Positions 1,586 to 26,449 of a stretch of DNA of 64,000 bases are shown here, piece by piece. The notes below the pieces were generated by a model, which searched no databases, had not been told where the DNA came from, and saw only the letters and a list, made by a program, of their open reading frames with translations. The stretch comes from Phaeosaccion multiseriatum (lineage: Eukaryota; Protista; Ochrophyta, other classes): contig OZ218958.1 in assembly GCA_965112735.1 (NCBI GenBank), positions 3,162,001-3,226,000 on the forward strand, read 5' to 3'. The position numbers were made by a program, and so were the translations under genes. Position 1 is the first letter of the stretch; the number at the start of each line of letters is the position of its first letter.

Positions 1586-4500
1586 ATGAAGGTCAAGGCC
1601 GCTACTGTCGCGGCCTTCCTGGCCTTCATCTCCCCCTTCGCCGGCCGCGTCACCGCCATCGATGCCTTCGAACAACCGTCCACGCCTCAGCCTGTTCCCC
1701 CGCCTACGGAGGGGTCTCCAAGTGTGGACAAGCCTGTCTGGATAGAGCCGCCCACCGCCCCGGCGCCTGTCTGGACCGAGCCCGCGCCCCCCACCGCCTC
1801 ACCTGTCAAGAGCAAGAACAAGAAGAGCAAGAAGGAGGACAGCAAGAAGGATAGCGAACCCTGGACAGACCCTACCGTGCAGGTAAGCACTTGCAGCGAA
1901 CGGCCTGGGAGCATCGTGCCTGCCCGCGCCCGCCAAGCTCTAGTTCAAGTCCCGCTTCCGCATGCTCGCTGCTAAGCCTCTCTCTCTCTCTCTCTCTCTC
2001 TTGCTATGCTCTCTGCATCCTCCTTCTCTCGCTGCTGCTCCACATCATTGGCTACTCCTCGCCGGTCCTTGCTGCCCCAAACTACAGCCCGCCCCCGCGC
2101 CTGTCTGGATAGAGCCGCCCACCACCCCCGCGCCTGTTTGGACCGAGCCCCCGCCCCCCACCGCCTCGCCTGTCAAGAGCAAGAACAAGGAGAGCAAGAA
2201 CAAGAAGAGCAAGAACAAGAAGAGCAAGAAGGAGGACAGCAAGAAGGATAGCGAACCCTGGACAGACCCTACCGTGCAGGTAAGCACTTGCACCGAAACG
2301 GTGGGAGCATCGTGCTTGCCCGCCAAGCTCTAGTTCAAGTCCCGCTTCCTCATGCTCGCTGCTAAGCCTCTCTCTCTCTTGCTATGCTATGCTCTCTGCA
2401 TCCTCCTTCGCTCGCTACTGCTCGCCGGTCCTTGCCGCCCCAAATCACAGCCCGCCCCCGCGCCTGTTTGGACACCCGCGCCCACCACTACCGCGCCTGT
2501 CTGGATAGAGCCGCCCACCACCCCCGCGCCTGTTTGGACCGAGCCCCCGCCCCCCACCGCTTCGCCTGTCAAGAGCAAGAACAAGGAGAGCAAGAACAAG
2601 AAGAGCAAGAACAAGAAGAGCAAGAACAAGAAGAGCAAGAAGGAGGACAGCAAGAAGGATAGCGAACCCTGGACAGACCCTACCGTGCAGGTAAGCACTT
2701 GCACCGAAACGGTGGGAGCATCGTGCCTGCCCGCCAAGCTCTAGTTCAAGTCCCGCTTCCTCATGCTCGCTGCTAAGCCTCTCTCTCTCTTGCTATGCTA
2801 TGCTCTCTGCATCCTCCTTCGCTCGCTACTGCTCGCCGGTCCTTGCCGCCCCAAATCACAGCCCGCCCCCGCGCCTGTTTGGACACCCGCGCCCACCACT
2901 ACCGCGCCTGTCTGGATAGAGCCGCCCACCACCCCCGCGCCTGTTTGGACCGAGCCCCCGCCCCCCACCGCCTCGCCTGTCAAGAGCAAGAACAAGGAGA
3001 GCAAGAACAAGAAGAGCAAGAACAAGAAGAGCAAGAAGGAGGACAGCAAGAAGGATAGCGAACCCTGGACAGACCCTACCGTGCAGGTAAGCACTTGCAC
3101 CGAAACGGTGGGAGCATCGTGCCTGCCCACCAAGCTCTAGTTCAAGTCCCGCTTCCTCATGCTCGCTGCTAAGCCGCTCTCTCTCTTGCTATGCTCTGCA
3201 TTCTGCATCCTCCTTCTCTCGCTACTGCTCGCCGGTCCTTGCCGCCCCAAATCACAGCCCGCCCCCGCGCCTGTTTGGACACCCGCGCCCACCACTACCG
3301 CGCCTGTCTGGAGCGAGCCCCCGTCCCCCACCGCCTCACCTGTCAAGAACAAGAAGAGCAAGAAGGAAACCGTGCAGGTAAGCACTTACAGCGAACGGCC
3401 TGGGAGCATGGTGCCTGGGAGCATGGTGCCTGCCCGCGCCCGCCAAGCTCTAGTTCAAGTCCCGCTTCCGCATGCTCGCTGCTACTAAGCCTCTCTCTCT
3501 CTCTTGCTATGCTCTCTGCATCCTCCTTCTCTCGCTACTGCTCGCCGGTCCTTGCCGCCCCAAATCACAGCCCGCCCCCGCGCCTGTTTGGACACCCGCG
3601 CCCACCACTACCGCGCCTGTCTGGAGCGAGCCCCCGTCCCCCACCGCCTCACCTGTCAAGAACAAGAAGAGCAAGAAGGAAACCGTGCAGGTAAGCACAT
3701 ACAGCGAACGGACGGCCTGGGAGCATGGTGCCTGCCCGCGACCGCCAAGCTCTAGTTCAAGTCCCGCTTCCTCATGCTCGCTGCTAAGCCGCTCTCTCTC
3801 TTGCTATGCTCTGCTCTCTGCATCCTCCTTCTCTCGCTACTGCTCGCCGGTCCTTGCCGCCCCAAATCACAGCCCGCCCCCGCGCCTGTTTGGACACCCG
3901 CGCCCACCACTACCGCGCCTGTTTGGACCGAGCCCCCGTCCCCCACCGCCTCACCTGTCAAGAACAAGAAGAGCAAGAAGGAAACCGTGCAGGTAAGCAC
4001 TTACAGCGAACGGCCTGGGAGCATGGTGCCTGGGAGCATGGTGCCTGCCCGCGCCCGCCAAGCTCTAGTTCTTGTCCCGCTTCCGCATGCTCGCTGCTAC
4101 TAAGCCTCTCTCTCTCTCTCTTGCTATGCTCTCTGCATCCTCCTTCTCTCGCTACTGCTCGCCGGTCCTTGCCGCCCCAAATCACAGCCCGCCCCCGCGC
4201 CTGTTTGGACACCCGCGCCCACGACTACCGCGCCTGTCTGGAGCGAGCCCCCGTCCCCCACCGCCTCACCTGTCAAGAACAAGAAGAGCAAGAAGGAAAC
4301 CGTGCAGGTAAGCACTTACTACAGCGAACGGCCTGGGAGCATGGTGCCTGCCCGCGCCCGCCAAGTTCTTGTCCCGCTTCCGCATGCTCGCTGCTACTAA
4401 GCCTCTCTCTCTCTCTGGCTATGCTCTCTGCATCCTCCTTCTCTCGCTACTGCTCGCCGGTCCTTGCCGCCCCAAATCACAGCCCGCCCCCGCGCCTGTT

Positions 4501-7500
4501 TGGACACCCGCGCCCACCACTACCGCGCCTGTCTGGAGCGAGCCCCCGTCCCCCACCGCCTCACCTGTCAAGAACAAGAAGAGCAAGAAGGAAACCGTGC
4601 AGGTAAGCACTTACTACAGCGAACGGCCTGGGAGCATGGTGCCTGCCCGCGCCCGCCAAGCTCTAGTTCAAGTCCCGCTTCCGCATGCTCGCTGCTACTA
4701 AGCCTCTCTCTCTCTCTTGCTATGCTCTCTGCATCCTCCTTCTCTCGCTACTGCTCGCCGGTCTTTGCCGCCCCAAATCACAGCCTGCCCCCGCGCCTGT
4801 TTGGACACCCGCGCCCACCACTACCGCGCCTGTCTGGAGCGAGCCCCCGTCCCCCACCGCCTCACCTGTCAAGAACAAGAAGAGCAAGAAGGAAACCGTG
4901 CAGGTAAGCACTTACAGCGAACGGCCTGGGAGCATGGTGCCTGCCCGCGCCCGCCAAGCTCTAGTTCAAGTCCCGCTTCCTCATGCTCGCTGCTAAGCCG
5001 CTCTCTCTCTTGCTATGCTCTGCATTCTGCATCCTCCTTCTCTCGCTACTGCTCGCCGGTCCTTGCCGCCCCAAATCACAGCCCGCCCCCGCGCCTGTTT
5101 GGACACCCGCGCCCACCACTACCGCGCCTGTTTGGAGCGAGCCCCCGTCCCCCACCGCCTCACCTGTCAAGAACAAGAAGAGCAAGAAGGAAACCGTGCA
5201 GGTAAGCACTTACTACAGCGAACGGCCTGGGAGCATGGTGCCTGCCCGCGCCCGCCAAGTTCTTGTCCCGCTTCCGCATGCTCGCTGCTACTAAGCCTCT
5301 CTCTCTCTCTTGCTATGCTCTCTGCATCCTCCTTCTCTCGCTACTGCTCGCCGGTCCTTGCCGCCCCAAATCACAGCCCGCCCCCGCGCCTGTTTGGACA
5401 CCCGCGCCCACCACTACCGCGCCTGTCTGGAGCGAGCCCCCGTCCCCCACCGCCTCACCTGTCAAGAACAAGAAGAGCAAGAAGGAAACCGTGCAGGTAA
5501 GCACTTACTACAGCGAACGGCCTGGGAGCATGGTGCCTGCCCGCGCCCGCCAAGCTCTAGTTCAAGTCCCGCTTCCGCATGCTCGCTGCTACTAAGCCTC
5601 TCTCTCTCTCTTGCTATGCTCTCTGCATCCTCCTTCTCTCGCTACTGCTCGCCGGTCCTTGCCGCCCCAAATCACAGCCCGCCCCCGCGCCTGTTTGGAC
5701 ACCCGCGCCCACCACTACCGCGCCTGTCTGGAGCGAGCCCCCGTCCCCCACCGCCTCACCTGTCAAGAACAAGAAGAGCAAGAAGGAAACCGTGCAGGTA
5801 AGCACATACAGCGAACGGCCTGGGAGCATGGTGCCTGCCCGCGCCCGCCAAGCTCTAGTTCAAGTCCCGCTTCCTCATGCTCGCTGCTAAGCCTCTCTCT
5901 CTCTTGCTGTGCTCTGCATCCTCCTTCTCTCGCTACTGCTCGCCTGTCCTTGCCGCCCCAAATCACAGCCCGCCCCCGCGCCTGTTTGGACACCCGCGCC
6001 CACCACTCCCGCCCCTGTCTGGACCGAGCCCGAGCCCGCGCCGCCCACCGCCTCACCTGTAAAGAGCAAGAGCAAGAAGAGCAAGAAGGAGACCGTGCAG
6101 GTAAGCACTTACAGCGAACCGCCTGGGAGCATGGTGCCTGCCCGCGCCCGCCAAGCTCTAGTTCAAGTCCCGCTTCCTCATGCTCGCTGCTAAGCCTCTC
6201 TCTCTCTTGCTGTGCTCTGCATCCTCCTTCTCTCGCTACTGCTCGCCGGTCCTTGCCGCCCCAAATCACAGCCCGCCCCCGCGCCTGTTTGGACACCCGC
6301 GCCCACCACTCCCGCCCCTGTCTGGACCGAGCCCGAGCCCGCGCCGCCCACCGCCTCACCTGTAAAGAGCAAGAGCAAGAAGAGCAAGAAGGAGACCGTG
6401 CAGGTAAGCACTTACAGCGAACAGCCTGGGAGCATGGTGCCTGCCCGCGCCCGCCAAGCTCTAGTTCAAGTCCCGCTTCCTCATGCTCGCTGCTAAGCCT
6501 CTCTCTCTCTTGCTGTGCTCTGCATCCTCCTTCTCTCGCTACTGCTCGCCTGTCCTTGCCGCCCCAAATCACAGCCCGCCCCCGCGCCTGTTTGGACACC
6601 CGCGCCCACCACTCCCGCCCCTGTCTGGACCGAGCCCGAGCCCGCGCCGCCCACCGCCTCACCTGTAAAGAGCAAGAGCAAGAAGAGCAAGAAGGAGACC
6701 GTGCAGGTAAGCACTTACAGCGAACAGCCTGGGAGCATGGTGCCTGCCCGCGCCCGCCAAGCTCTAGTTCAAGTCCCGCTTCCTCATGCTCGCTGCTAAG
6801 CCTCTCTCTCTCTTGCTGTGCTCTGCATCCTCCTTCTCTCGCTACTGCTCGCCGGTCCTTGCCGCCCCAAATCACAGCCCGCCCCCGCGCCTGTTTGGAC
6901 ACCCGCGCCCACCACTCCCGCCCCTGTCTGGACCGAGCCCGAGCCCGCGCCGCCCACCGCCTCACCTGTAAAGAGCAAGAGCAAGAAGAGCAAGAAGGAG
7001 ACCGTGCAGGTAAGCACTTACAGCGAACCGTCTGGGAGCATCGTGCCGTTCACCATCTCCCAATGCTTCATTGCTCCATCTGACCTTGCTGTCCTTCACT
7101 CCATAAGCCATCACAGACATCGCTCTTGGCCAAGCTTATCTGTGATTGCTTGGTGCCCTTCACCATCTCCCAATGCTTCATTCCTCCATCTGACCTTGCT
7201 GTCCTTCGTTCCATTGCTCTCGCAAGGCCCACCAGCCCAAGGCCCCCGCCCCGACGACCTCTCCGACCAAGAAGGTAAGCCATCACAGACATCGCTCTTG
7301 GCCACGCTTATCTGTGTCAGTTGGTGCCCTTCACCATCTCCCAATGCTTCATTGCTCCATCTGACCTTGCTGTCCTTCGTTCCATTGCTCTCGCAAGGCC
7401 CACCAGCCCAAGAGCGATGTCTGTGATTGCTTGGTGCCCTTCACCATCTCCCGATGCTTCATTGCTCCGTCTGACCTTGCTGTCCTTCGTTCCATTGCTC

Positions 7501-10500
7501 TCGCAAGGCCCACCAGCCCAAGGCCCCCGCACCGACGACCAAGGTGTACTCTCCGACCAAGAAGGTAATAAGCCATCACAGACATCGCTCTTGGCCAAGC
7601 TTATCTGTGTCGGTTGGTGCCCTTCACCATCTCCCAATGCTTGATTCCTCCATCTGACCTTGCTGTCCTTCGCTCCATTGCCCTCGCAAGGCCCACCCGC
7701 CCAAGAGCGATGTCTGTGATTGCTTGGTGCCCTTCACCATCTCCCAATGCTTCATTCCTCCATCTGACCTTGCTGTCCTTCGTTCCATTGCTCTCGCAAG
7801 GCCCACCAGCCCAAGGCCCCCGCCCCGACGACCTCTCCGACCAAGAAGGTAAGCCATCACAGACATCGCTCTTGGCCACGCTTATGTGTGTCAGTTGGTG
7901 CCCCTCACCATCTCCCAATGCTTTATTCCTCCATCTGACCTTGCTGTCCTTCGCCCCATTGCCCTCGCAAGGCCCACCAGCCCAAGAGCGATGTCTGTGA
8001 TTGCTTGGTGCCCTTCACCATCTCCCAATGCTTCATTGGTCCATCTGACCTTGCTGTCCTTCGTTCCATTGCTCTCGCAAGGCCCACCAGCCCAAGAGCG
8101 ATGTCTGTGATTGCTTGGTGCCCTTCACCATCTCCCAATGCTTCATTGCTCCGTCTGACCTTGCTGTCCTTCGTTCCATTGCTCTCGCAAGGCCCACCAG
8201 CCCATGGCCCCCGCACCGACGACCAAGGTGTACTCTCCGACCAAGAAGGTAATAAGCCATCACAGCCATCGCTCTTGGCCAAGCTTATCTGTGTCGGTTG
8301 GTGCCCTTCACCATCTCCCAATGCTTGATTCCTCCATCTGACCTTGCTGTCCTTCGCTCCATTGCCCTCGCAAGGCCCACCAGCCCAAGAGAGATGTCTG
8401 TGATTGCTTGGTGCCCTTCACCATCTCCCAATGCTTGATTCCTCCATCTCTGACCTTGCTGTCCTTCGTTCTATTGCTTTCGCAAGGCCCACCAGCCCAA
8501 GGCCGCCGCACCGACGCCCAAGGTGTCCTCTCCGACCAAGAAGGTAAGCGATCACAGACATCGCTCTTGGCCAAGCTTATCTGTGTCGGTTGGTGCCCTT
8601 CACCATCTCCCAATGCTTGATTCCTCCATCTGACCTTGCTGTCCTTCGCTCCATTGCCCTCGCAAGGCCCACCAGCCCAAGAGCGATGGCTGTGATTGCT
8701 TGGTGCCCTTCACCATCTCCCAATGCTTCTTTCCTCCATCTGACCTTGCTGTCCTTCGTTCCATTGCTCTCGCAAGGCCCACCAGCCCAAGGCCCCCGCA
8801 CCGACGCCCAAGGTCTACTCTCCGACCAAGAAGGTAAGCCATCACCGACATCGCTCTTGGCCAAGCTTATCTGTGTCAGTTGGTGCCCCTCACCATCTCC
8901 CAATGCTTCATTCCTCCATCTGACCTTGCTGTCCTTCGTTCCATTGCTCTCGCAAGGCCCACCAGCCCAAGGCCCCCGAACCGACGACCAAGGTGTACTC
9001 TCCGACCAAGAAGGTAAGCCATCACAGGCATCGGTCTTTGCCACGCTTATCTGTGTCAGTTGGTGCCCCTCACCATCTCCCAATGCTTCATTCCTCCATC
9101 TGACCTTGCTGTCCTTCGTTCCATTGCTCTCGCAAGGCCCACCAGCCCAAGGCCCCCGCACCGACGCCCAAGGTGTACTCTCCGACCAAGAAGGTAATAA
9201 GCCATCACAGACATCGCTCTTGGCCAAGCTTATCTGTGTCGGTTGGTGCCCTTCACCATCTCCCAATGCTTCATTCCTCCATCTGACCTTGCTGTCCTTC
9301 GTTCCATTGCTCTCGCAAGGCCCACCAGCCCAAGGCCCCCGCCCCGACGCCCAAGGTCTACTCTCCGACCAAGAAGGTAAGCCATCACAGGCATCGCTTT
9401 TTGCCACGCTTATCTGTGTCAGTTGGTGCCCCTCACCATCTCCCAATGCTTCATTCCTCCATCTGACCTTGCTGTCCTTCGTTCCATTGCTCTCGCAAGG
9501 CCCACCAGCCCAAGGCCCCCGCACCGACGCCCAAGGTGTACTCTCCGACCAAGAAGGTAATAAGCCATCACAGACATCGCTCTTGGCCAAGCTTATCTGT
9601 GTCGGTTGGTGCCCTTCACCATCTCCCAATGCTTCATTCCTCCATCTGACCTTGCTGTCCTTCGCCCCATTGCCCTCGCAAGGCCCACCAGCCCAAGAGC
9701 GATGTCTGTGATTGCTTGGTGCCCTTCACCATCTCCCAATGCTTCATTGCTCCATCTGACCTTGCTGTCCTTCGCTCCATTGCTCTCGCAAGGCCCACCA
9801 GCCCAAGGCCCCCGCACCGATGACCTCTCCGACCAAGAAGGTAAGCCATCACAGGCTTATCTGTGTCGGTTGGTGCCCTTCACCATCTCCCAATGCTTCA
9901 TTCCTCCATCTGACCTTGCTGTCCTTCGTTCCATTGCCCTCGCAAGGCCCACCAGCCCAAGGCCCCCGCCCCGACGCCCAAGGTCTACTCTCCGACCAAG
10001 AAGGTAAGCCATCACAGGCATCGCTCTTTGCCACGCTTATCTGTGTCAGTTGGTGCCCCTCACCATCTCCCAATGCTTCATTGCTCCATCTGACCTTGCT
10101 GTCCTTCGCCCCATTGCTCTCGCAAGGCCCACCAGCCCAAGAGCGATGCCTGTGATTGCTTGGTGCCCCTCACCATCTCCCAATGCTTGATTCCTCCATC
10201 TGACCTTGCTGTCCTTCGCCCCATTGCTCTCGCAAGGCCCACCAGCCCAAGGCCCCCGCCCCGACGCCCAAGGTGTACTCTCCGACCAAGAAGGTAAGCC
10301 ATCACAGACATCGCTCTTGGCCACGCTTATCTGTGTCAGTTGGTGCCCCTCACCATCTCCCAATGCTTCATTCCTCCATCTGACCTTGCTGTCCTTCGCC
10401 CCATTGCCCTCGCAAGGCCCACCAGCCCAAGAGCGATGTCTGTGATTGCTTGGTGCCCTTCACCATCTCCCAATGCTTCATTGCTCCATCTGACCTTGCT

Positions 10501-10871
10501 GTCCTCCGTTCCATTGCTCTCGCAAGGCCCACCAGCCCAAGGCCCCCGCCCCGACGCCCAAGGTCTACTCTCCGACCAAGAAGGTAAGCCATCACAGGCA
10601 TCGCTTTTTGCCACGCTTATCTGTGTCAGTTGGTGCCCCTCACCATCTCCCAATGCTTCATTCCTCCATCTGACCTTGCTGTCCTTCGTTTCATTGCTCT
10701 CGCAAGGCCCACCAGCCCAAGAGCGATGTCAGTGATTGCTTGGTGCCCTTCACCATCTCCCAATGCTTCATTGCTCCATCTGACCTTGCTGTCCTCCGTT
10801 CCATTGCTCTCGCAAGGCCCACCAGCCCAAGGCCCCCGCAACGATCATGTGCTCAGACCTTTGCTCCGAAG

Positions 10872-10934
<63 letters not shown>

Positions 10935-10941
10935 TGTGTGT

Positions 10942-10980
<39 letters not shown>

Positions 10981-11471
10981 CGTGCGTGTGTGTCCCGCTC
11001 ACTCTAGCGCCTGCGTCTTCTGCCTGTTTCTGCCCCCCTTTCGCCCTTTCCACTCCTCCTCTGCAGACCCCATGTTATATGGACCCCACTTGCTCTATTT
11101 ATGGAGGTCTTGGATGCAACGCGCATGGTGCCGGCCAGAACTGCCGCTTCTGTGGCAAGGGCGAGTGGATCGATTGCTCTCGCATCATCCCCATCGAAGA
11201 TGCGCCCACGGACGACTCACCCGCGTGCACGCCTTCTTCCGCCGAGCTTCATCAAGGATTTGATAAGGGCATCTTCGCCGACCCCTCCTGCCTTGGCGAT
11301 GCTCCTGGCGTCCTGTGCAACTACATGGGCCTTGGACAGGAGTGCCGTGGCTGCTGGCTTACCTGTGAGGGCGCTACGGCTGCCATGGTGACCTACCCCG
11401 AGTTCACCCGCGAGAACATTGTCTTCTGCCCTTCATCGGGCCTCACCAGCTACTCAACGGACTGTGAATGA
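1586..11471 (+). CDS. Secreted Pro/Thr/Lys-rich repeat protein with C-terminal Cys-rich domain (gene 1; ~33 exons, ~1220 aa if all exons are used)
   Basis: Signal peptide MKVKAATVAAFLAFISPFAGRVTA. Type-A exons ending GTGCAG|gtaagc: 1586-1882, 2088-2279, 2451-2690, 2862-3086, nine 120-nt exons from 3258 to 5797, four 132-nt exons from 5969 to 7009. Fifteen 39/48-nt type-B exons from 7236 to 10873 (PKAPAPTxKVYSPTKK). Terminal exon 11067-11471 has two Cys modules (DPTC..GGLGC..NCRFC; DPSC..GVLC..ECRGC). All junctions are phase 0 with no in-frame stops. Confidence 0.8.
1740..7050 (+). repeat. Tandem exon+intron array A (17 units, ~295-411 bp)
   Basis: Near-identical units each contain cacag|cccgcccccgcgcctg...accgtgcag|gtaagcac; the last four exons repeat with an exact 303-bp period (5969, 6272, 6575, 6878). 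Confidence 0.95.
7051..10873 (+). repeat. Tandem micro-exon+intron array B (15 exons plus 10 dead exon copies)
   Basis: Repeated ttggtgcccttcaccatctcccaatgc...ctcgcaaggcccaccagcccaag block, followed either by an exon ending aagaag|gtaa or by agcgatgtctgtgattgc (no conserved donor). Confidence 0.95.
10874..10992. repeat. (GT)n microsatellite at the start of the last intron of gene 1
   Basis: Directly visible; the first GT serves as the donor. Confidence 0.95.
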
Positions 11472-20030: not shown

Positions 20031-20151
20031 TGAGAGCTCTCTTAGCGCGGGTATTCGGATCTAGTCTAGCGCGGGTTTGGTAAAAGTAAATTGAATACGA
20101 AAAATAAATACTACTACGAAGTACGTAGTAAAAGACAATCCAAAGAGTCAG

Positions 20152-20550
20152 TCTGTGGCAAGGGCGAGTGGATCGATTGCGAGAGCATCATCCCCACCGA
20201 TGGCGGAGATGCGCCCACGGATGACTCACCTGCGTGCAACCCTTCCGCCGAGATGAGCGCCATGCTTCTTCAAGGATTCGATTGGGTGATGCCCCTGGCA
20301 TGCTGTGTAACTACATGGGCCTTGGACAGGAGTGCCGGGTGTGCTGGCTCACCTGCGAGAGCGCGGCCGCCGGCATGCTTACCTACCCCGAGTTCGCCCC
20401 GGAGACCATCATCTTGTGCCCTTCATCGGGCCTCACCAGCTACTCTACGGACTGTGCATAAGCCGCGAGGCTGATGGCGTAGTTTCCCGTGTCCATCGTT
20501 TCTCGACTATAACGCGACGTCGAGACTCCCGAACCACCCTTCGCGTGATT
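20152..20550 (+). pseudogene. Orphan, frameshifted copy of the Cys-rich terminal exon and 3' UTR of gene 1
   Basis: CGKGEWIDCESIIP...APTDDSPAC, then a deletion removing KGIFADPSC and a frameshift, then GDAPGMLCNYMGLGQECRVCWLTCE...CPSSGLTSYSTDCA*; UTR matches ~11484-11545. Confidence 0.9.
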
Positions 20551-22233: not shown

Positions 22234-25200
22234 ATGCAGGTCAGGGCCGCAACTCTCGCCGCCTTCCTGGCCCTCACCTCCCCCTTCTTCGGTGCCGCCG
22301 CGTCCGGTGACTCCGGATACGAGAGCTGGAACGGCGAGGTCTGCCCTCGCGACTGCCCCCACCCCCTCGTGCCGAGCAAGTGTGTTCCCCTCGATGAGTG
22401 CAAGCTCTTCTCGTGCGACTTCGAGCTGGATGTGCCCACCTGCAGCGGAATGGTCCAGCTGACCCTCTTCGGCGAGTGCGAGGACGGCTCCGGCTCAGGC
22501 TACAGCTGCACCTTCCCGGACGGCCTCGAGGTTCCTCAGAACGGAGAAGACTGCGATGGCACCGGACACCCGCATCGCTCGCTCCTGGGCTGGATGAACA
22601 GGAAGAAGAGCGCCGTGGTTTCTGCGACCGAGACGCTGGAGAAGCTCCTCCCCGTGGGCAGCAGCCCCTGTGGAGAGGGATACACCGTCGTCTTCGACCA
22701 CGACAGCTCCGAGGTGCACTGCTCGCTGTCGGAGGGGCAGCAGGAAGGAGGTCGCGAGCTCAGGACCCGACTGGAAATGGCCAAGACTTACAAGGTGGAC
22801 AATCCAAGGAAGAAGTGCAACGCCGGGCACTACCCCAAGTCGTGCCAGTGCCCCCATCCCGAGCGGTCCGTGTATGGCGACAGCTGCGCCGCCTTCTCTC
22901 ACGACATCCGCGAGCTCTGTTCGCCCGAGGGAGAGTACGAGTGTCGATACACCCCCACACCCGCGCCCACGCCTCAGCCTATCTGGATAAAGCCTCCGAC
23001 CATGAAGGTAAGCAACCACGGCAGTCAGAGGCAGAATGCTTTGCCCGTCGAGCGTGTCTCAGCCTGGCTTTAGTCCTACGCTCCTTGCTGCATCTCGCTT
23101 CTCCCCCGCGTTGCGTCCTCCGTCTCTCGCTGCTCATGAACCGCATCCTTCCCGTCATCCCTTCCCCAACCACAGCCCACACTGACTCCTACCGACGCTC
23201 CCACGCCCGCCCCGACCATGAAGGTATGAGATCACAACGGTCAGAGGCAGCGTGCTTTGCCCGTTGAGCTCGTACCTCAGCCTTGCTTCATTCCTACGCT
23301 CCCTTCTGAGTCTCGCTTCTCCCCGGCTTTGCTTCCTCCTCGTCTCCTCGCTGCCCCGCATCTTTCCCGTCCTCGTTGCCCCGCGCACAGCCCACAAAGG
23401 CTCCTACCGACGCTCCCACGCCCGCCCCGACCATGAAGGTAGAGATCACAACCATCAGAGACAGCGTGCTTTGCCCGTTGAGCTCGTACCTCAGCCTTGC
23501 TTCATTCCTACGCTCCCTTCTGAGTCTCGCTTCTCCCCGGCTTTGCTTCCTCCTCGTCTCCTCGCTGCCCCGCATCTTTCCCGTCCTCGTTGCCCCGCGC
23601 ACAGCCCACGAAGGCTCCTACGGACGCTCCCACGCCCGCCCCGACCACGAAGGTAGAGATCACAACCATCAGAGGCAGCGTGCTTTGCCCGTTGAGCTCG
23701 TACCTCAGCCTTGCTTCATTCCTACGCTCCCTGCTGAGTCTCGCTTCTCCCCGGCTTCGCTTCCTCCTCGTCTCCTCGTTACCCCGCATCTTTCCCGTCC
23801 TCGTTGCCCCGCCCACAGCCCACGAAGGCTCCTACCGACGCTCCCACGCCCGCCCCGACCATGAAGGTATGAGATCACAACAGTCAGAGACAGCGTGCTT
23901 TGCCCGTTGAGCTCGTACCTCAGCCTTGCTTCATTCCTACGCTCCCTGCTGAGTCTCGCTTCTCCCCGGCTTTGCGTCCTCCGTCTCTCGCTGCTCATGA
24001 ACCACATCCTTCCCGTCATCCCTTCCCAAACCACAGCCCACGAAGGCTCCTACGGACGCTCCCACGCCCGCCCCGACCATGAAGGTAAGAGATCACAACC
24101 ATCAGAGGCAGCGTGCTTTGCCCGTTGAGCTCGTACCTCAGCCTTGCTTCATTCCTACGCTCCCTGCTGAGTCTCGCTTCTCCCCGGCTTCTTCCTCCTC
24201 GTCTCCTCGCTGCCCCGCATCTTTCCCGTCCTCGTTGCCCCGCGCACAGCCCACGAAGGCTCCTACGGACGCTCCCACGCCCGCCCCGACCATGAAGGTA
24301 GAGATCACAACAGTCAGAGACAGCGTGCTTTGCCCGTTGAGCTCGTACCTCAGCCTTGCTTCATTCCTACGCTCCCTGCTGAGTCTCGCTTCTCCCCGGC
24401 TTTGCTTCCTCTTCGTCTCCTCGCTGCCCCGCATCTTTCCCGTCCTCGTTGCCCCGCGCACAGCCCACGAAGGCTCCTACCGACGCTCCCACGCCCGCCC
24501 CGACCATGAAGGTATGAGATCACAACCATCAGAGGCAGCGTGCTTTGCCCGTTGAGCTCGTACCTCAGCCTTGCTTCATTCCTACGCTCCCTTCTGAGTC
24601 TCGCTTCTCCCCGGCTTTGCTTCCTCCTCGTCTCCTCGCTGCCCCGCATCTTTCCCGTCCTCGTTGCCCCGCGCACAGCCCACGAAGGCTCCTACCGACG
24701 CTCCCACGCCCGCCCCGACCATGAAGGTAGAGATCACAACAGTCAGAGGCAGCGTGCTTTGCCCGTTGAGCTCGTACCTCAGCCTTGCTTCATTCCTACG
24801 CTCCCTGCTGAGTCTCGCTTCTCCCCGGCTTTGCTTCCTCCTCGTCTCCTCGCTGCCCCGCATCTTTCCCGTCCTCGTTGCCCCGCGCACAGCCCACAAA
24901 GGCTCCTACCGACGCTCCCACGCCCGCCCCGACCATGAAGGTAGAGATCACAACCATCAGAGACAGCGTGCTTTGCCCGTTGAGGTCGTACCTCAGCCTT
25001 GCTTCATTCCTACGCTCCCTGTTGAGTCTCGCTTCTCCCCGGCTTTGCTTCCTCTTCGTCTCCTCGCTGCCCCGCATCTTTCCCGTCCTCGTTGCCCCGC
25101 GCACAGCCCACGAAGGCTCCTACGGACGCTCCCACGCCCGCCCCGACCATGAAGGTAGAGACCACAACAGTCAGAGACAGCGTGCTTTGCCCGTTGAGCT

Positions 25201-26449
25201 CGTACCTCAGCCTTGCTTCATTCCTACGCTCCCTGCTGAGTCTCGCTTCTCCCCGGCTTCGCTTCCTCCTCGTCTCCTCGCTGCCCCGCATCTTTCCCGT
25301 CCTCGTTGCCCCGCGCACAGCCCACGAAGGCTCCTACCGACGCTCCCACGCCCGCCCCGACCATGAAGGTAAGAGATCACAACAGTCAGAGACAGCGTGC
25401 TTTGCCCGTTGAGCTCGTATCTCAGCCTTGCTTCATTCCTACGCTCCCTGCTGAGTCTCGCTTCTCCCCGGCTTTGCTTCCTCCTCGTCTCCTCGCTGCC
25501 CCGCATCTTTCCCGTCCTCGTTGCCCCGTGCACAGCCCACGAAGGCTCCTACCGACGCTCCCACGCCCGCCCCGACCATGAAGGTAGAGATCACAACCAT
25601 CAGAGACAGCGTGCTTTGCCCGTTGAGCTCGTACCTCAGCCTTGCTTCATTCCTACGCTCCCTTCTGAGTCTCGCTTCTCCCCGGCTTTGCTTCCTCCGT
25701 CTCTCGCCGCTCATGAACCGCATCCTTCCCGTCATCCCTTCCCAAACCACAGCCCACGAAGGCTCCTACGGACGCTCCCACGCCCGCCCCGACCATAGAG
25801 GTAAGAGATCACAACCATCAGAGGCAGCGTGCTTTGCCCGTTGAGCTCGTACCTCAGCCTTGCTTCATTCCTACGCTCCCTGCTGAGTCTCGCTTCTCCC
25901 CGGCTTTGCTTCCTCCTCGTCTCCTCGCTGCCCCGCATCTTTCCCGTCCTCGTTGCCCCGCGCACAGCCCACGAAGGCTCCTACCGACGCTCCCACGCCC
26001 GCCCCGACCATGAAGGTAAGAGATCACAGCGGTCAGAGACAGCGTGCTTTGCCCGTTGAGCTCGTACCTCAGCATTGCTTTAGTCCTACGCTCCCTGCTG
26101 AGTCTCGCTTCTCCCCGGCTTTGCTTCCTCCGTCTCTCGCCGCTCATGAACCACATCCTTCCCGTCATCCCTTCCCAAACCACAGCCCACGATGGCTCCC
26201 ACCCCCACGCCGGTCTGGACGCGGCCCCCCACGAAGGCTCCCGTCTGGCAGTCGGTACCCTACTACCCCTCCTCTAAGGACAGCGACTCAAAGGAATCGG
26301 ATTCCTCCTCCGACGACAAGCACAAAAAGCACCACAAGAGAAAGAGCAAGAAGAGCAAGCGGAAGAGAAGGGGCAAGGGCAAGGGCAAAGGAAAGGCCAA
26401 AGGAAATCGCAAGGGCAAGGGGGGCAAGGGAGGCAAGTGGTCTTGGTGA
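22234..26449 (+). CDS. Secreted protein with N-terminal Cys-rich domain, PTKAPTDAPTPAPTMK repeats and acidic-then-basic Lys/Gly tail (gene 2; 16 exons, ~569 aa)
   Basis: Signal peptide MQVRAATLAAFLALTSPFFGAAA is homologous to gene 1. Exon 1 22234-23007; fourteen 48-nt phase-0 exons starting at 23176, 23391, 23605, 23819, 24037, 24250, 24464, 24679, 24893, 25107, 25321, 25536, 25753, 25968; terminal exon 26186-26449 (...SKDSDSKESDSSSDDKHKKHHKRKSKKSKRKRRGKGKGKGKAKG...KWSW*). Confidence 0.85.
23008..26200 (+). repeat. Tandem exon+intron array C (~214-bp period)
   Basis: Near-identical units cacag|cccacgaaggctcctaccgacgctcccacgcccgccccgaccatgaag|gta. Confidence 0.95.

Follow-up and report, generated by a model that had tools for sequence, protein, structure and literature searches.

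The stretch of DNA considered here, hereafter the window, comprises 64,000 nt of the genome of the ochrophyte alga Phaeosaccion multiseriatum (assembly GCA_965112735.1, contig OZ218958.1, positions 3,162,001 to 3,226,000 of the forward strand), and has a base composition of 59.5% G+C. Its first gene, which would encode a secreted repeat protein, consists of a signal peptide-like first exon, an array of Pro/Trp/Lys-rich 'A' cassettes, a second array of 'B' cassettes and a Cys-rich exon at 11067-11471 (Table 1). The introns of the B array, some of which contain partial copies of the array's own acceptor region enclosed by inverted repeats, are the subject of this analysis. Each B exon encodes a repeat of the type AHQPKAPAPT(P/T)KVYSPTKK, and all 15, translated singly, are open in frame 0. 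As an in-frame TGA would stop read-through 87-90 nt past the donor in 13 of the 14 introns, and after 312 nt in intron 11, the assignment of exons and introns appears sound on coding grounds. Tandem Repeats Finder detects periods of 110, 180, 290 and 363 at 93-97% identity; together with near-identical units, symmetric phase-0 exons and mosaic sharing of variants, these higher-order periods identify the locus as a homogenised exon-intron cassette array.

Additional copies of the acceptor region, termed decoys, are found in nine of the 14 B introns (1-5, 10 and 12-14), and number ten in total, two of them being in intron 3. These counts, including the doubly occupied intron, agree with those of a first-pass annotation of the same sequence. 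Every decoy is a module comprised of a 77-nt intron tail, running from TTGGTGCCC to CTCGCAAG and ending in CGCAAG, and a 33-nt stub. The tail includes a pyrimidine tract and a branch-like CTGAC, taken as the branch site from its motif alone, while the stub is made up of GCCCACCAGCCCAAG, corresponding to exon nt 1-15, then AGCGATGTCTGTGAT, then TGC. The decoy acceptor does not differ from the true one anywhere between the branch site and the 15th exon base, pyrimidine tract and AG included, and the distance from the donor to the decoy AG, 123 or 126 nt, equals the length of an entire intron in four of the five that have no decoy. Use of a decoy would lengthen the mRNA by 110 nt (112 in intron 4, and 220 from the first decoy of intron 3) and, as proposed in the first-pass annotation, shift the reading frame. 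The 110-nt extension contains no in-frame stop, and the shifted frames are open as far as the last exon, where they terminate at 11389 or 11261, except for a stop at 9821 in one of them. All three frames of almost every B exon are likewise stop-free, 9821 again being one exception.

The final part of the stub (AGCGATGTCTGTGAT and TGC), combined with the exon-derived CCAAG, is the exact reverse complement of ATCACAGACATCGCTCTTGG, which begins 8 or 11 nt into the intron. The resulting 5' and 3' arms had been described as exactly complementary (for instance, 7282-7301 with 7408-7427); this applies to the 20-mers of six of the ten decoys (those of introns 1, 2, 10 and 13, and both in intron 3), the other four having 1-4 non-Watson-Crick positions. 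In full, 7277-7301 and 7408-7432 are complementary at all but one of 25 positions, as far as donor position +3. With 106 nt between the arms, both their spacing and the predicted folding confirm the earlier description of a loop of about that size holding the decoy AG. Folding with ViennaRNA gives mean arm pairing probabilities of 0.82-0.99 in all nine decoy-bearing introns, cis arm duplex energies of -27.9 to -41.5 kcal/mol and, for intron 1, a z of -5.6 against shuffled controls; on these predictions, pre-mRNA from each of the nine should contain the stem, although the copies all trace to one event and are not ten independent observations. The complete decoy branch site, pyrimidine tract and AG are enclosed in the loop without being paired to the stem, and the unpaired probability is 0.47-0.61 at decoy signals versus 0.46-0.56 at true acceptors. 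As the 5' arm of intron 3 prefers the proximal of its two potential partners, the second decoy AG in this intron (8081) is outside the favoured stem. An equally good partner for each 3' arm is the 5' arm of the intron that follows, 125-137 nt downstream; this pairing would enclose a real exon. The 5' arm of intron 11 was removed by a 17-nt deletion at 9855; this loss from the head (9841-9870), between two GC dinucleotides, leaves a 106-nt intron from which the inner part of the quasi-palindrome is gone and in which the outer ATCACAG/CTGTG arms are kept.

Table 1. Coordinates of the features of the B array and related sequences within the window
Feature	Position(s)	Strand	Remarks
Secreted repeat-protein gene	1586-11471	+	First gene of the window; ATG at 1586; includes the B array
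B array	7227-10873	+	15 phase-0 exons of 48 or 57 nt; 14 introns
B intron donors	7275, 7565, 7849, 8249, 8544, 8834, 9014, 9194, 9377, 9557, 9841, 10004, 10294, 10584		
Decoy modules	7321-7430 (intron 1), 7614-7723, 7895-8004, 8005-8114, 8298-8407	+	110 bp each; period 110
Decoy modules, continued	8590-8699, 9606-9715, 10050-10159, 10340-10449, 10630-10739	+	110 bp each
5' arm, intron 1, 25-nt form	7277-7301	+	AAGCCATCACAGACATCGCTCTTGG
5' arm, starts of 20-nt core	7282, 7575, 7856, 8259, 8551, 8841, 9021, 9204, 9384, 9567, 10011, 10301, 10591	+	
3' arm, intron 1	7408-7432	+	CCAAGAGCGATGTCTGTGATTGCTT
3' arm, starts of 20-nt core	7408, 7701, 7982, 8092, 8385, 8677, 9693, 10137, 10427, 10717	+	
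3' arm, variant bases	8392 (A), 8689 (G), 10149 (C), 10731 (A)		
Double decoy, intron 3	7895-8114	+	5' arm pairs with proximal 3' arm (P 0.98), not distal (P 0.01)
Intron 12 arm pair with double change	10011-10156	+	G 10018 opposite C 10149; extra U-C mismatch at 10029
Complementary allele pair split across introns 4 and 5	8254-8701	+	C 8266 (intron 4, 5' arm); G 8689 (intron 5, 3' arm)
Paralogous cassette array (outgroup), neighbouring gene	22996-26131	+	Intron heads with 19/24-nt homologue of the 5' arm
Edge relic in A/B junction intron	7043-7149	+	Partial intron tail without acceptor, then TAAGCC, then head

The origin of the arms can be approached through a paralogous cassette array in a neighbouring gene, the introns of which are homologous to those of the B array: they follow the same exon end, CGACCA(A/T)GAAG followed by GTA, and have, at the equivalent location, a 19/24-nt match to the 5' arm. 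Neither a decoy nor an inverted copy of the arm was found in this array. Since only the 5' arm is represented there, it would be the older of the two, and the 3' arm a derived, inverted copy; the paralogous array aligns in the intron head and not clearly beyond it. Although they belong to different genes, the two arrays also have TGCTTCATTCCT in common in their intron tails and an A/G polymorphism at the same position of their heads, which suggests either old paralogy or exchange between them.

A further indication of origin comes from the intron at the A/B junction. The tail of the head at this edge, CTTATCTGTGATTGC, is a local quasi-palindrome with a predicted hairpin of -8.3 kcal/mol (z -2.5), the last 10 nt of which equal the tail of every stub. 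More extensively, the tail of the edge head, 7131-7153, has the same sequence as the stub tail (CTGTGATTGC followed by TTGG), and that head folds with the same outer stem. The sequence following CCAAG in the decoy is therefore that of an intron head, contrary to the earlier description of an exon body that had been replaced. The junctions of the rearrangement show microhomology at the putative switch points and a pre-existing imperfect palindrome, although the order of events is a reconstruction: the CCAAG of the exon faces the CTTGG of the head, and CTGTGAT is common to the stub and the tail of the edge head. The new sequence is an exact reverse complement of adjacent, older sequence (20/20 in six decoys), and, of the two arms, only the 5' arm has a homologue in the paralogous array. 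The same edge also includes a second kind of dead unit, at 7043-7103, in which an intron tail lacking its last 20 nt and AG is fused to TAAGCC, a donor minus its G; here, both exon and acceptor are deleted.

Variation among the decoys indicates how they subsequently spread. Their tails have an average of 3.89 differences from the true tail of their own intron versus 3.25 from the decoys of other introns. Because they are no closer to their own intron's tail and share position-specific variants, a single origin followed by spread as a 290-bp unit is indicated. The 5' arms of introns 9 and 14 are identical, one being in an intron without a decoy and the other in an intron with one, which implies that modules are shuffled by recombination.

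These observations are brought together by the proposal that the 'dead exon copies' represent tandem repetition of 110 bp within a larger repeat, the 180-bp exon-plus-intron unit of a homogenised array of cassettes, and that they arose and have been maintained at the level of DNA, an account that we consider slightly better than an even bet. Under this proposal, one rearrangement would have placed an inverted copy of the intron head directly after exon base 15 (...CCAAG), with the complementarity between CCAAG of the exon and the CTTGG ending the head arm acting as the switch point. Replication may then have re-entered, at CTGTGAT, the tail of the head itself in an older version (GATTGC followed by TTGGTGCC). 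This could represent a template-switch mutation with two switches or, alternatively, a microhomology deletion from CCAAG to CCAAG followed by perfection of the pre-existing quasi-palindrome. Either event would have removed the exon body, the donor and the 5' arm, leaving a perfect inverted copy; the resulting 290-bp unit would then have spread, with the number of decoys per intron drifting to zero, one or two through unequal crossing-over and gene conversion. Unequal exchange would also account for the two decoys of intron 3. The near-perfect complementarity of the arms would reflect their youth and the homogenisation of the array, rather than purifying selection, and the complementary alleles at one arm position may result from arm-to-arm templating or from a shared variable site. 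An RNA hairpin would form in the pre-mRNA as a by-product, the decoys being tolerated through help from the stem or, alternatively, through a failure of exon definition, as no donor follows the acceptor 48-57 nt downstream. Template switching at a quasi-palindrome in DNA had been listed as an alternative in the first-pass annotation, and fits the anatomy better than the splice switch favoured there, in view of the inverted copy, the microhomology and an outgroup head without a partner arm.

Support for the splice switch had been drawn from apparent compensation between the arms. Intron 12 does have the double change: the stem has an energy of -38.3 kcal/mol with its own partner and -35.6 kcal/mol with the consensus partner, a gain of 2.7 kcal/mol through conversion of a tolerated G-U pair to G-C. 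It is not, however, accompanied by a covariation signal. In an alignment of the nine decoy-bearing intron halves, the RNAalifold covariation term is -0.18 kcal/mol; the cells of the 25-bp stem alignment include one double change, two wobble pairs and six broken pairs; and permuting the 3' arms among introns gives a mean of 218.6 paired cells against the 219 observed (P=0.42). Intron 12 is the only case in which an arm pairs better with its own partner than with the consensus, three others being weaker: introns 4 (-30.7 vs -36.4 kcal/mol), 5 (-40.3 vs -45.4 kcal/mol) and 14 (-27.9 vs -33.0 kcal/mol). In introns 4 and 5, both cis stems are weakened because a complementary allele pair is split between them, the 5' arm of the former (8254-8278) and the 3' arm of the latter (8677-8701) forming the strongest pair of all, at -43.6 kcal/mol. 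Furthermore, the 'compensated' position is polymorphic in the paralogous array, six A to five G, in the absence of any partner arm.

Nor are the arms specially conserved relative to neighbouring intron sequence, substitution density being 5.0% for 5' arms overall and 3.3% for those of decoy-bearing introns, compared with 2.0% for 3' arms and 2.75% for the tail alongside. It had also been observed that the 5' arm is altered in four of the five decoy-free introns, a count that holds; three of the nine decoy-bearing introns have altered arms as well, and the association between intact arms and decoys (6/3 vs 1/4) gives a one-sided Fisher p of ~0.13 before allowing for shared descent. As the altered arms of introns 7, 9, 12 and 14 are one shared haplotype, this association is confounded as well as not significant, and was discarded as evidence. 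Folding and covariation analysis of the nine decoy-bearing introns, along the lines suggested in the first-pass annotation, predicts that the stems fold and detects no cis-covariation. Nothing in the sequence indicates selection or regulation of the hairpin as a splice switch.

Several points weigh against an origin and maintenance purely at the DNA level. The decoy acceptor matches the true one in sequence and lies at the canonical distance from the donor; as it is equally good and is transcribed first, in-frame production of the protein would require some mechanism of bypass, for which a predicted stem of this stability, in exactly the right place, is an obvious candidate. Additionally, no decoy is without a usable stem, the lowest pairing probability being 0.82, and the 5' arms are somewhat more decayed in the introns that have no decoy. 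Finally, the allele sets at one pair position, {A,G,C} and {T,C,G}, would be unlikely under independent mutation (p ~0.05, a rough estimate), implying some flow of information between the arms, which selection could also produce.

A hairpin of whatever origin might therefore render the decoys harmless by looping out 106 nt, including the decoy branch site and AG, such that the true acceptor is used, a possibility that we regard as real but doubtful. In this case, the donor would be brought to within about 53-56 linker nt of the true branch site, and decoy modules could have spread only because each carried its own neutralising arm. The pairing probabilities and z score cited above are consistent with this, as are the location of the decoy at canonical intron length and the frameshifting 110 nt that its use would add. 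The linkers, 7-10 nt on the donor side and ~46 nt to CTGAC on the other, fit a rule of at least 42 nt modelled for the zipper stems of yeast (PMC12350175), in which stems covering cryptic 3' sites have been found to be enriched (PMC12350175). However, though the linkers total 53-56 nt, the 20-nt stem begins just 7-10 nt from the donor, and its 25-nt form at +3; the latter reaches donor positions +3 to +6 in seven decoy-bearing GTAAGC introns, and +6 to +10 in three GTAATAAGCC introns, and could hinder the donor as readily as help it. The stem pairs with no decoy signal, leaving these as accessible as the true acceptors; the favoured stem of intron 3 excludes its second decoy; and neither covariation nor cis-optimisation is apparent. 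A genuine exon would be hidden if 3' arms took their equally good partner in the following intron. There is also no need to shorten an intron of 233 nt, other introns of the gene and of its neighbour in the window being ~200 nt, as measured from the sequence. That the stem is a built-in neutraliser, with a competent duplicate acceptor skipped only because the arm of its module zips to the intron head, seems rather unlikely; exon definition is the other candidate for the preference for the true site, as a decoy has no donor 48-57 nt downstream.

Productive use of the decoys is less probable still. They could be spliced in either as a 21-nt in-frame micro-exon (GCCCACCAGCCCAAGAGCGAT followed by GTCTGT as donor), adding AHQPKSD, or as alternative 3' sites giving rise to frame-shifted, Pro/Arg-rich isoforms. 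The length of 21 nt is divisible by three, the 110-nt extension is free of in-frame stops and the shifted frames, mostly open to the last exon (9821 excepted), present no early stop to mark the transcript; a GTGTGT donor appears to be used by the last intron, at 10874. Yet the putative micro-exon donor is poor, with C at +3, is situated inside the 3' arm and has been lost from two of the ten copies (GG at 8688-8689 and GC at 10148-10149), making the micro-exon in particular unlikely, and a frameshift would cost the protein its Cys-rich C-terminal domain. Less credible again is a regulated switch in which Dscam-like or cross-intron pairings compete to loop out whole in-frame exons, varying the number of repeats: all exons are symmetric and in phase 0, and cross-intron pairs are as strong as those in cis, that between introns 4 and 5 being the best, but near-identical arms with no single docking site and no distinct selectors specify no choice, and the upstream cis partner is both closer and transcribed first. 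An assembly artefact affecting the number of decoys or the cis pairing of arms, conceivable in an array so difficult to assemble, is similarly improbable. The cis phase of the arm pairs is given by the assembly alone, no contig assembled from reads covering both arms of any pair, and one such contig collapses 7922 to 10657. Nevertheless, each type of junction is present without mismatches in contigs from four DNA-like runs, which are unspliced and derive from one sample that is possibly the assembly's own source, and the variant 3' arms are confirmed locally (10119-10188 and 8363-8422).

Comparable structures have been described in other systems. Template switching is documented to produce, in a single step, perfect stems together with changes that look compensatory (Monttinen and Loytynoja 2022, PMC8794818). 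As in such hairpins, a stretch of the B introns has given way to an exact inverted copy of sequence close by, with a stem that would be perfect at birth and a compensatory appearance without selection. By contrast, the event in the B array also deleted the exon body and donor and was then amplified in tandem, and its ancestral state is not reconstructable from an orthologue. The zipper and cryptic 3' site stems of yeast (PMC12350175 and work cited there) shorten the effective distance and put an unwanted AG out of play, as the B stem would; the loop of the B introns differs in holding a full duplicate branch site, tract and AG, rather than an AG alone, and its predicted stem begins 7-10 nt from the donor (2 nt in the 25-nt form). 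In zebrafish introns with AC and GT repeats (PMC4691745), intron-internal pairing likewise draws splice sites together, but involves simple-sequence repeats at both ends of introns genome-wide, whereas in the B array a unique 25-mer, in one gene, closes only the first half of the intron.

The docking and selector sequences of Dscam1 (PMC8791459, PMC3535345) resemble the B arms in being complementary intronic segments of a duplicated-exon array that could bias splicing against 'first come, first served', and had been invoked as a conceptual precedent. The analogy does not extend further: rather than several selectors sharing one docking site, each B intron has its own 5' arm and 3' arm or arms, paired one-to-one and near-identical between introns. 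The enclosed copies are non-coding stubs, retaining 15 exon bases and no conserved donor, instead of complete alternative exons from which a mutually exclusive choice is made, and, where pairing of the Dscam type is conserved with covariation across species, the B array shows no covariation among its own units. A parallel in overall organisation is provided by the LRR/ROCO cassette arrays of brown algae (PMC3341825), in which symmetric exons each encode one repeat, introns are kept near-identical by recombination and units are shuffled, though these are not reported to have partial dead units inside inverted repeats.

If the DNA-level account is correct, the array illustrates how perfect intronic hairpins and pseudo-acceptors can be generated in exon-cassette genes by template switching together with unequal crossing-over, and how a change may look compensatory with no selection acting on the RNA. 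Should the stem prove important, the array would be a natural experiment on structure-guided acceptor choice, with nine graded stems and five controls in one pre-mRNA. Were the neutralising role to hold, this allelic series (-27.9 to -41.5 kcal/mol, with one decoy outside its stem) would be an algal case of RNA structure prevailing over 'first come, first served' acceptor choice.

A miniature inverted-repeat transposable element or introner, represented by a 156-bp element extending from arm to arm, was also considered and rejected: it is flanked by no target-site duplication, its interior is the intron tail and exon start of the array itself, and, within the window, the arms are confined to the array. 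Small nested duplications in cassette introns are not unique to the B array, as some introns of the A array (3398-3432 and 4013-4047) have heads with a 15-bp tandem duplication, consisting of two copies of GCCTGGGAGCATGGT. Metagenome scans, one with a stub-junction pattern and the other with an intron-tail pattern, yielded no further copy of the locus.

Elsewhere in the gene, the last intron (10874-11066) apparently starts inside a 120-nt (GT)n microsatellite, at GAG followed by GTGTGT; its putative donor would accordingly be part of a length-variable repeat. Pfam has no match for the first exon or the Cys-rich C-terminal exon, and an Atlas search gave no usable match. A word-based protein search retrieved a single marine metatranscriptome protein, which shares with the latter exon (11067-11468) only the motif C-Y-x-D-P-T-C ... 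G-G-L-G-C-N-A-x-G-A-G-Q-N-C-R-F-C-G (C..DPTC...GGLGCNA.GAGQNCRFCG in the search), and the exon may encode an undescribed small Cys module. A second form of this exon, present in all four read sets, diverges from the window after 11466, with a different last codon and 3' end, and is an allele or paralogue. A fragment of the same C-terminal domain, 70-81% identical, is located at 20151-20455 within the window.

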